Part shown: positions 49,854 to 51,468 of the stretch, piece by piece | Layout: the number at the start of each line of letters is the position of its first letter | How positions within the stretch are numbered: the stretch's first letter is position 1 | Sequence record: PV764601.1 | Reading direction: 5' to 3' (one strand) | DNA length: 64,000 bases | Translations under genes and position numbers: made by a program | The notes under the pieces: generated by a model | Told to the model about the DNA's origin: nothing | Database searches by the model: none | The model's input: only the letters and a program-made list of their open reading frames with translations

Positions 49854-51468
49854 TTACTTGGACTTCTTCGACTTCTTGCCCTTAGCGGGCTTTTCCTTGC
49901 CCTTCACAGGCTTCTTTTCCTTGCCCTTCACAGGCTTCTTTTCCTTGCCCTTCACAGGCTTCTTGCCCTTACCCTTCTTGGGCTTCTCGTCCTCATCATC
50001 ATCATCATCGTCATCGTCATCGTCATCGTCATCGTCATCGTCATCCCTTGCCCTTCACAGGCTTCTTTTCCTTGCCCTTCACAGGCTTCTTGCCCTTACC
50101 CTTCTTGGGCTTCTCGTCCTCATCATCATCATCATCGTCATCGTCATCGTCATCGTCATCGTCATCGTCATCGTCATCGTCATCGTCATCGTCATCGTCA
50201 TCGTCATCGTCATCGTCATCATCATCGTCATCATCGTCATCGTCATCATCATCATCGTCATCATCGTCATCATCGTCATCATCATCATCGTCATCATCGT
50301 CATCGTCATCATCGTCATCATCGTCCGAAGACTTCTTGCCCTTACCCTTACCCTTCACAGGCTTCTTGCCTTTACCCTTACCCTTCTTGGGTTCATCATC
50401 GTCCTCGTCCTCATCGTCGTCATCGTCGTCATCGTCGTCATCGTCGTCATCGTCGTCATCGTCATCATCATCCGAAGACTTCTTCGACTTCTTGCCCTTC
50501 GACTTCTTGGCGAACGCGTCGTCTTCCTCATCGTCGTCGTCATCGTCATCATCCGAATCATCATCGTCATCATCGTCATCATCGTCATCATCGTCATCCG
50601 ACTTCGACTTACCCTTCGACTTGCCCTTACCCTTCTTGGGCTTGTCATCATCGTCGTCTTCGTCTTCGTCAGCGTCCGGCTTCTTGCCGAAGCCCAGCTT
50701 GATGACTTCTTCCTCAGCGCTCTTGAGGTCTTCCGCTTCCGGCATCTGATCCAAATCCCACAGCAGGTAGCCCTGCTCTTCCTCGGTCAGCGGCGACTTC
50801 TCACCCTTCTGCACGTCGTACATATCCGTGCCCGGACGATCCTTGTCAAACTGGATGGTCAGGTCCAGACCGTACTGGTCATCACCAATGTCGAAGCTCT
50901 TGGACTTCTTGGTGCCGGACTTCTTATCCTTAACCTTGTGGATGTTCAGTTCTTCCAGACGTGCAACCTTGCCCACCAGCGACGGAGACATGCGAATCAC
51001 ACGGCAAGGAGTCCAGCTGTCGCTTTCCTTGTCCTTGTAACCACACGACTTCTCAGCCTCGGTCATCTTGATCTTGCGCGGTGCCTTATCAGCCAGCGTG
51101 CGGATGATGGCGTTCCGGTAGTAGTTGATCGTGAAGCGATACTTCTGACGATCCTTCTCCGTCTTGCGCGGCAGATTGATGCAGTATGGGCACTTCTTCG
51201 TGCTGTCGCGCTGCTGCGTCAGGGGATCGAACGCCAAGCACTTCTTCGGAATCGAAGTCTTGCTGCCGTCCTGCTTCTTGATTTCAATCCAGTGCAGACC
51301 TTCGCACACCAGCGGGCCGACGAAACGAATCGCGGACCACTTCTTCGGTGGCCACGTGTGGAACTCCACAAGGTCGGAGAAACGCTTCTGCGAATCCTTA
51401 GACTTGCGGGCACCACCGAAGCCACCCTGAATTGCGTTTTTACTTTCTCGCTTGAACTTACTGCCCAC
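49854..51468 (-). CDS. gp32-like single-stranded DNA-binding protein with poly-Asp/Lys block tail (frame broken by a 127-bp duplication; track ORF ends at 50041)
   Basis: H...C...CPYC Zn pattern like T4 gp32; GGAGA RBS; natural TAA at 49854 just before the terminator. Confidence 0.7.
49919..50172. repeat. Perfect tandem 127-bp duplication inside the SSB tail
   Basis: 49919-50045 equals 50046-50172. Confidence 0.85.
50122..50325 (-). repeat. GAY trinucleotide microsatellite encoding 68 consecutive Asp
   Basis: tcg/tca runs on the + strand; shorter runs up to about 50660. Confidence 0.9.

Follow-up and report, generated by a model that had tools for sequence, protein, structure and literature searches.

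What does a run of 68 consecutive aspartate codons mean at the end of a gene for a protein that binds single-stranded DNA (an SSB) in a jumbo phage? The question is raised by a 64,000-nucleotide stretch of sequence record PV764601.1, the genome of Xanthomonas phage PhiXhv-12 (227,648 bp), of which it forms the final 64 kb; 12 kb surrounding the gene match that genome at 100% identity. This whole stretch is referred to as the window, and a window position, given here unless stated otherwise, equals the record position minus 163,648. PhiXhv-12 is a jumbo myovirus from sewage that infects X. hortorum pv. vitians, and its genome was obtained from 150-bp paired Illumina reads with the assembler SPAdes 4.0 (PMC13340338). 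An initial annotation of the window, made from the letters alone, had described an extreme block-polyampholyte tail on a gp32-like SSB and suggested that it serves as a DNA mimic, a cation buffer or a condensate scaffold. Based on the fold, the protein family, the conservation of tail modules, the polymorphism among isolates and the enrichment of Lys-rich tails on other phage proteins, the best-supported reading is that the tail is the disordered C-terminal domain of a gp32-type SSB, an acidic domain enlarged into a multivalent electrostatic hub. It would consist of four modules, with an exact length that drifts by slippage, and a 127-bp duplication in the deposited gene would be an artefact; we give this combined reading a probability of about one half.

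The SSB matches phrog_15004, "single strand DNA binding protein", with an E-value of 3.5e-64 (residues 22–304 on profile positions 14–311 of 421), and 95 phage records were matched by tblastn. A Pfam scan of the whole protein found no family at E <= 0.1, a profile search of PDB sequences returned only low-complexity matches (e.g., glycinin and ORC6) and no gp32 profile match, and scans of IMG/VR and the JGI metagenomes with the SSB core found zero relatives. An AF2 model of residues 1–265 had a predicted local distance difference test (pLDDT) value of 66.8. When the core model was submitted to Foldseek, gp32 of T4 or RB69 gave the only significant matches and all of the six best (E 3.8e-6 to 1e-3, probability 0.99–1.00), and VIA-align gave Z-scores of 8.3 (180 aligned residues) and 7.5 against gp32, with the next unrelated chain at 4.0. 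Despite a model of moderate confidence, the core is predicted to be a gp32-type oligonucleotide-binding (OB) fold, in agreement with the gp32-like core proposed initially. It contains His59, Cys77, Cys93 and Cys96, of which Cys93 is invariant, the complete pattern being present in four of five aligned sequences. Judged by this pattern, and by comparison with the residue numbers of the T4 gp32 zinc site, these residues could be a zinc site. Similarly, the N-terminal KFKRES appears, as a pattern, to resemble KRKST of the gp32 LAST motif, and the core is followed first by an acidic segment.

In the tail that follows, acidic blocks of 11, 27, 27 and 71 aa, whose uninterrupted Asp stretches measure 5, 14+8, 20 and 68 residues, alternate with Lys/Gly-rich blocks of 15, 15, 22 and 23 aa. 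The Asp runs of about 9, 20, 25 and 68 residues with Lys-rich separators that had been reported from the letters were roughly right, and the 68 consecutive Asp residues are borne out by the deposited sequence (Table 1). The 68-Asp run is composed of mixed GAT-GAC and GAT-GAT-GAC microsatellite stretches, and its longest perfectly periodic stretch measures 89 nt. With a charged fraction of 0.80, a net charge of −83 and a kappa-like index of 0.73 compared to 0.20 for shuffled sequences, the tail is indeed a block polyampholyte. A motif of the form (D/E)3-x-P-K..K (e.g., EDEKPKKGK) is present at three of its four junctions. Chance is no issue for the 68-Asp run, since it consists of 68 successive GAY (GAT or GAC) codons within an open reading frame (ORF) that carries an SSB-family core (E 3.5e-64). 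Plus-strand ORFs for poly-Ser and poly-Ile/Val over the tract were dismissed as mirror-frame artefacts of the GAY repeat.

Table 1. Positions of the SSB gene, its tail elements and related genes (window positions unless marked as record positions)
Feature	Position	Strand	Description
SSB gene as deposited	50041..51468	-	475 aa, GTG start; ORF and phrog_15004 match; GenBank "hypothetical protein" XYR92959.1
SSB core, aa 1–264	50677..51468	-	disordered basic N-terminus, then predicted gp32-type OB core (AF2, Foldseek, VIA)
Block-polyampholyte tail as deposited, aa 265–475	50044..50676	-	disordered; four acidic blocks alternating with Lys/Gly-rich blocks
Acidic block 1	50644-50676	-	11 aa, Asp run of 5
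Acidic block 2	50518..50598	-	27 aa, D14-S-D8-EEDD
Acidic block 3	50392..50472	-	27 aa, D20 plus EDEDDDE; 17–27 aa in other isolates
68-codon Asp run (within acidic block 4)	50122..50325	-	43 GAT + 25 GAC; 204 nt
Exact 127-bp tandem duplication	49919..50172		Tandem Repeats Finder 100% match, 2.0 copies; copies 49919-50045 and 50046-50172
Out-of-frame SSB continuation	49856..50042	-	encodes further Asp and the same Lys-rich repeats, followed by the conserved basic C-terminus, whose last residues before the stop are KPAKGKKSKKSK
Sigma-factor gene	51492..52508	-	upstream of SSB; phrog_17569, E 8.6e-50
RecA/UvsX-like recombinase gene	48218..49687	-	adjoins SSB downstream; PF00154 and phrog_97; Lys/Ala-rich N-terminal extension of ~40 aa
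Strong intrinsic terminator	49719..49746	-	11-bp stem and T-run; ~110 nt past the restored SSB stop, ahead of the recombinase gene
Lys-tailed clamp loader, DNA polymerase, two topoisomerase subunits	window 39999-41276; record 12822-15890, 147186-148700, 154515-155414	- (window)

The interval 49854–50700, in which the tail had been placed without naming a strand, does contain it, on the minus strand; however, positions 49856–50040 are in another frame, and a 127-bp duplication had been overlooked. The duplication is not flanked by microhomology on either side. Because 127 is not a multiple of three, the SSB frame shifts and the deposited ORF stops at 50041. Removal of one copy gives a single ORF of 495 aa, which runs to 49856 and shares its C-terminus with the 465-aa SSB gene of PhiXhv-15, an intact copy. 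The close GenBank relatives of PhiXhv-12 are PhiXhv-15 and PhiXhv-16 from France and Ep026 and Ep032 from Israel, and the C-terminus encoded by 49856–50042 was found in all four of them. The real PhiXhv-12 SSB is most likely 495 aa long and ends at 49856. The SSB gene of PhiXhv-16 contains an analogous exact duplication of 131 bp, and collapsing it gives a 479-aa ORF, again with the same C-terminus. Two GenBank mini-coding sequences, XYR92957.1 and XYR92958.1 (102 and 93 nt), sit in the duplicated, frame-shifted SSB 3' end of PhiXhv-12 and are almost certainly spurious.

The 127-bp duplication probably arose during assembly or finishing. Neither duplication keeps step with the 3- and 6-nt repeat, which is not what slippage driven by homology would produce. 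The PhiXhv-12 record begins at the terminase gene and was thus rotated after assembly; since 127 is also the largest SPAdes k-mer, an untrimmed circular overlap is the likeliest cause in PhiXhv-12. SPAdes k = 127 was considered as the explanation of both duplications and rejected, as it fits PhiXhv-12 and not the 131-bp repeat of PhiXhv-16.

The variation in length of the GAY tract, which the initial annotation had anticipated, was seen among the five isolates, all of whose tract lengths rest on short-read assemblies. Acidic block 4 contains 71 aa in PhiXhv-12, 61 aa in PhiXhv-15, 57 aa in PhiXhv-16, and 46 aa in both Ep026 and Ep032, while acidic block 2 contains 27, 24 and 27 aa in the three PhiXhv phages, at least 43 aa in Ep026 and at least 60 aa in Ep032. 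French and Israeli isolates thus expand different acidic blocks, block 2 of Ep026 and Ep032 having at least 48 Asp. The flanks of the tract are 97–100% identical among these isolates, and the basic blocks B1–B3 are of equal length in each isolate where assembled, whereas the acidic blocks differ in length and in their GAT/GAC pattern. Constant basic blocks next to varying acidic blocks are what one sees when coding microsatellites slip independently of one another, and, as in a slipping coding microsatellite, the length polymorphism is confined to the repeat in otherwise near-identical genomes. The exact Asp count, 68 in PhiXhv-12, probably drifts by replication slippage and is not tightly selected.

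The reliability of these lengths was examined in the available assemblies. The contigs of Ep026 and Ep032 end within a perfect 9-nt repeat of acidic block 2, where both records were linearised. The Ep026 record, OQ603353.1, marked "UNVERIFIED", has ~120 nt of unrelated AT-richer sequence (positions 1–125) where the ends of the circle meet within the SSB gene. Public sequencing runs with a PhiXhv-12-like phage (20 runs) exist as k=31 Logan contigs, four of which were compared over 2,501 letters (49000–51500); the contigs of these four runs break at 49936–49980, at ~50328 and at 50611, and positions 49981–50327 were skipped as repeat. The 89-nt longest periodic stretch could in principle be resolved by 127-mers or 150-nt reads, and 68 is the number as assembled from short reads. 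A near-identical phage is present at 33–41x, in contigs of 62–107 kb, in two public runs (2019 and 2024) whose labels name single organisms; it has a 3-nt insertion and three substitutions at 49900–49906. Sequence words shared with the phage were also seen in metagenomes from sediment, honey, drinking water and wastewater.

We compared the SSB with its relatives in phrog_15004, a family of jumbo-phage SSBs that includes phiRSL1 ORF222, BcepSauron gp242, Lu11_0172, Alexandra_247, the Motura ssDNA-binding protein and a protein of RHph_N46 that was auto-annotated as "Nop14-like". The core of PhiXhv-12 SSB is 31–37% identical to these relatives. Tails of 135–240 aa in which acidic and Lys-rich segments alternate were found in phiRSL1, BcepSauron, Alexandra, Lu11, RHph_N46, Motura and three metagenomic proteins, and block tails are present in 11 of the 13 sampled homologues, with a kappa-like index of 0.37–0.73 compared to 0.12–0.20 for shuffled sequences (z 7–21). 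Nearly all acid-to-base junctions across the family have the form (D/E)3-x-Pro(-Pro)-x-Lys-x-Lys (DDDEPKSKKK in Motura), with three to six such motifs per tail in the other members. As this motif is near-universal, the tails are arrays of one homologous module and not random low complexity. The net charge of the tail ranges across the family from −83 in PhiXhv-12 to +17; it is blockiness that is conserved and not the polyanion. The acidic runs of the relatives are mixtures of Asp and Glu with no more than 10 consecutive Asp, in contrast to the PhiXhv/Ep lineage, where alone they are pure, GAY-encoded Asp of up to 68 residues. Several relatives have an acidic tip, which reads DDDIPF in Motura and P0004, whereas PhiXhv-12 SSB ends in a basic block.

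Literature searches returned no description of modular acid/base tails in jumbo-phage SSBs, and the PhiXhv-12 tail is an extreme variant of this undescribed, family-wide design. The initial contrast with the short tails of T4 gp32 and Escherichia coli SSB consequently holds in part: the purity and length of the Asp run are exceptional, but long tails of acidic and basic blocks are the norm of the family. The nearest non-identical relative, P0002, is 62% identical, has the same synteny and carries a tail of only 25–45 aa, on a 43-kb contig that is uninterrupted there. In this relative (locus positions 3330–3400), the SSB ORF stops just before a stretch that encodes the acidic end LDDDEDEEDDED, followed by a stop, one base out of frame; the earlier stop may reflect a true truncation or else a frameshift in the contig, which was assembled with k=31.

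Three better-known systems offer a comparison. T4 and RB69 gp32 resemble PhiXhv-12 SSB in the predicted fold and, at the level of sequence pattern, in the succession of a basic N-terminus, an OB core with a His/Cys3 pattern and an acidic C-domain, although identity is only 12–16%. The 48-aa acidic C-domain of T4 gp32 binds back on the basic DNA-binding surface, which constitutes a kinetic block, and also docks replication and recombination proteins (PMC5892887); the tail of PhiXhv-12 SSB is ~225 aa long and includes homopolymers as well as basic blocks set between the acidic ones. E. coli SSB likewise has a disordered C-terminal tail that is a protein-recruitment hub and drives condensation (PMC12143593, PMC11947617), and its DDDIPF tip recurs in two phrog_15004 members. 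It differs in its homotetrameric OB architecture and in a linker that is Gly/Gln/Pro-rich and not charge-blocked, and the PhiXhv-12 protein has no acidic tip. Acidic (D/E) tracts combined with Lys blocks constitute a condensate grammar of nucleolar proteins such as nucleolin and UBF, in which long acidic tracts are interspersed with Lys blocks on a nucleic-acid-binding domain (PMC11938373). Those proteins are eukaryotic and not homologous, and their role is the organisation of sub-nucleolar phases, whereas a condensate role in the phage is only proposed.

The whole PV764601.1 record was scanned for Lys-rich segments, defined as at least 9 Lys in 24 residues. Such segments occur in 9 of 26 annotated DNA-metabolism coding sequences compared to 7 of 303 others (Fisher p 2e-7, with a rough classification by hand). 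They are located at the C-terminal end of DNA polymerase, at the N-terminal end of one topoisomerase subunit and the C-terminal end of another, and at the N-terminal ends of the clamp loader (a phrog_5846 match at 1e-63 that carries the annotation "DnaA") and of RecA, and occur also in two helicases. The Lys-rich N-terminal tail of RecA was present in all eight family genomes examined, and the acidic blocks may have the RecA-like recombinase as an electrostatic client. Strict co-variation of this tail with a long acidic SSB tail was considered and dismissed, as the short-tailed P0002 keeps the Lys-tail.

The charge grammar of the SSB tail recurs outside the window. A 510-aa hypothetical protein (record 150691–152223) is a second block polyampholyte, with an Ala/Lys/Thr-rich, H1-like N-terminal half followed by poly-Glu blocks that are split by blocks of the EEEKPAKGGKK type; it ends in ~100 aa of almost pure Glu, its junction grammar is that of the SSB tail, and a PHROG search with it gave no match. 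A 257-aa hypothetical protein (record 138203–138976), whose N-terminus is rich in Lys and whose D/E-rich C-terminus contains Pro-Lys junctions, is a third protein with this grammar.

Taken as an enlarged gp32 C-domain, the tail would be built from four homologous copies of a module that comprises an acidic run, a short x-Pro hinge and a Lys/Gly-rich block. In the PhiXhv/Ep026 lineage, the acidic runs would have become pure Asp through GAY microsatellites that expand and contract by slippage. By analogy with gp32, the acidic blocks may fold onto the basic DNA-binding cleft and onto the tail's own Lys blocks and so act as a gate for DNA binding. They may also form a multivalent dock for the Lys-rich tails of DNA polymerase, the topoisomerase subunits, the clamp loader and the RecA-like recombinase, while the interleaved Lys blocks would bridge tail to tail and tail to DNA, so that SSB-coated ssDNA and enzymes could concentrate together. 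Gating, docking and condensation are each proposed here by analogy. Among the roles that had been suggested initially, a condensate scaffold is the most compatible with the data, as far as these allow one to infer a function. A wider proposal, which we consider unlikely, is that phiRSL1-like phages run replication and recombination in a charge-driven condensate, with the SSB tail as scaffold, the H1-like poly-Glu/Lys-block protein as co-scaffold, the Lys tails as client tags and Asp slippage as a fast-evolving dial with which the phage population could tune the condensate.

The main rival explanation is neutral expansion, in which a runaway microsatellite has made the tail a permissive disordered spacer and neither the GAY length nor the homopolymer state has any function; it is possible, although we doubt it. 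It would account for acidic blocks that differ in length between isolates with 97–100% identical flanks, for the expansion of different blocks in different isolates, for the near-absence of a tail in P0002 at 62% identity and for the runs of at most 10 Asp in other family members. The short-tailed relative and the isolate variation support it for length, not for architecture: block architecture, Pro-Lys junction and the first post-core acidic block are kept at only 31–37% core identity, the intact PhiXhv-15 copy holds its frame through a low-complexity stretch of more than 200 codons, and the grammar recurs in a second protein of PhiXhv-12. Several observations weigh against the tail being an enlarged, functional C-domain. 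The near-perfect Asp homopolymer has the look of a product of recent slippage, not of selection on the sequence, and the short tail of P0002 indicates that a long tail is not essential; that the tail might be dispensable had been raised at the outset, and in evolution this is partly the case, judging from the tail of ~25–45 aa in this syntenic relative. The SSBs of GR11A and Amme-1 have short, mainly basic tails, the Lys tails of other proteins are independent of a long SSB tail and may simply bind DNA, and the confidence of the core model (pLDDT 66.8) is moderate. Furthermore, 131 bp is no SPAdes k-mer size, which leaves the artefact account of the duplications not fully mechanistic.

A different objection is that the poly-Asp blocks are real and that the length of 68, like the 127-bp duplication, results from short-read mis-assembly. 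The exact duplications in PhiXhv-12 (127 bp) and PhiXhv-16 (131 bp) both lie inside the tract, the Ep026 and Ep032 assemblies break in the SSB gene and one of them has foreign sequence where it joins, the 150-nt reads are shorter than the 204-nt Asp run, and the public k=31 contigs all break at the tract. We nevertheless regard this as distinctly unlikely, as five assemblies from two laboratories all give either a block 4 of 46–71 aa or a block 2 of at least 48 Asp, and the 89-nt longest periodic stretch is shorter than both 127 nt and the read length, with an irregular GAT/GAC pattern that anchors the reads. Least probable, and in our view very improbable, is the decoy function proposed initially, in which a polyanionic tail sequesters host DNA-binding defence proteins or buffers divalent cations. 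Phages do use acidic DNA mimics such as Ocr, and a net charge of −83 with a very high carboxylate density is in line with such a role. However, net tail charges from −83 to +17 together with conserved basic blocks make a DNA-mimic or simple-polyanion role a poor fit. A conserved net polyanionic surface of the Ocr/ArdA type was not found, all homologous tails keeping their interleaved basic blocks. Rather than being an early stand-alone inhibitor, the tail forms part of a replication protein that is abundant, and a homopolymer presumably cannot copy the fixed phosphate geometry of folded mimics.

If its length is real, the 68-Asp run would be, to our knowledge, one of the longest Asp homopolymers in a protein of any phage or bacterium, and the replication protein that carries it is essential and abundant. 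Beyond this single run, the modular acid/base tail with a conserved junction motif in a jumbo-phage SSB family is an undescribed trait, and PhiXhv-12 also has Lys-rich tails on many of its DNA enzymes. This may provide a tractable bacterial-virus system in which to study charge-patterned disordered tails in SSB regulation, partner recruitment and a possible replication compartment. The GenBank entries could also be corrected: PhiXhv-12 and PhiXhv-16 probably carry frame-breaking duplications, and both label the SSB a hypothetical protein, with spurious mini-genes after it.

Most of the phrog_15004 family genomes examined keep the gene order sigma factor, SSB, RecA. Both flanks are so annotated in phiRSL1, BcepSauron and GR11A. 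A RecA-like gene is annotated downstream of the SSB in Lu11, RHph_N46, Motura and the P0002 locus, where the upstream sigma factor has no annotation; in Alexandra, which also has no annotated sigma factor upstream, the gene downstream of the SSB is N-terminally Lys-rich. Amme-1 has a sigma factor beside the SSB and a hypothetical protein downstream. No tRNA-Asp was found in the 64-kb window, and the whole PhiXhv-12 record annotates only a tRNA-Asn. Genes of the 7-deazaguanine pathway (QueD-like and GTP cyclohydrolase) flank the SSB-RecA module in the region 47440–54618, with QueD at record 211088–211546. Queuosine also modifies tRNA-Asp, and it may be speculated that this bears on the ~120 Asp codons of the SSB gene in a phage without a tRNA-Asp of its own.

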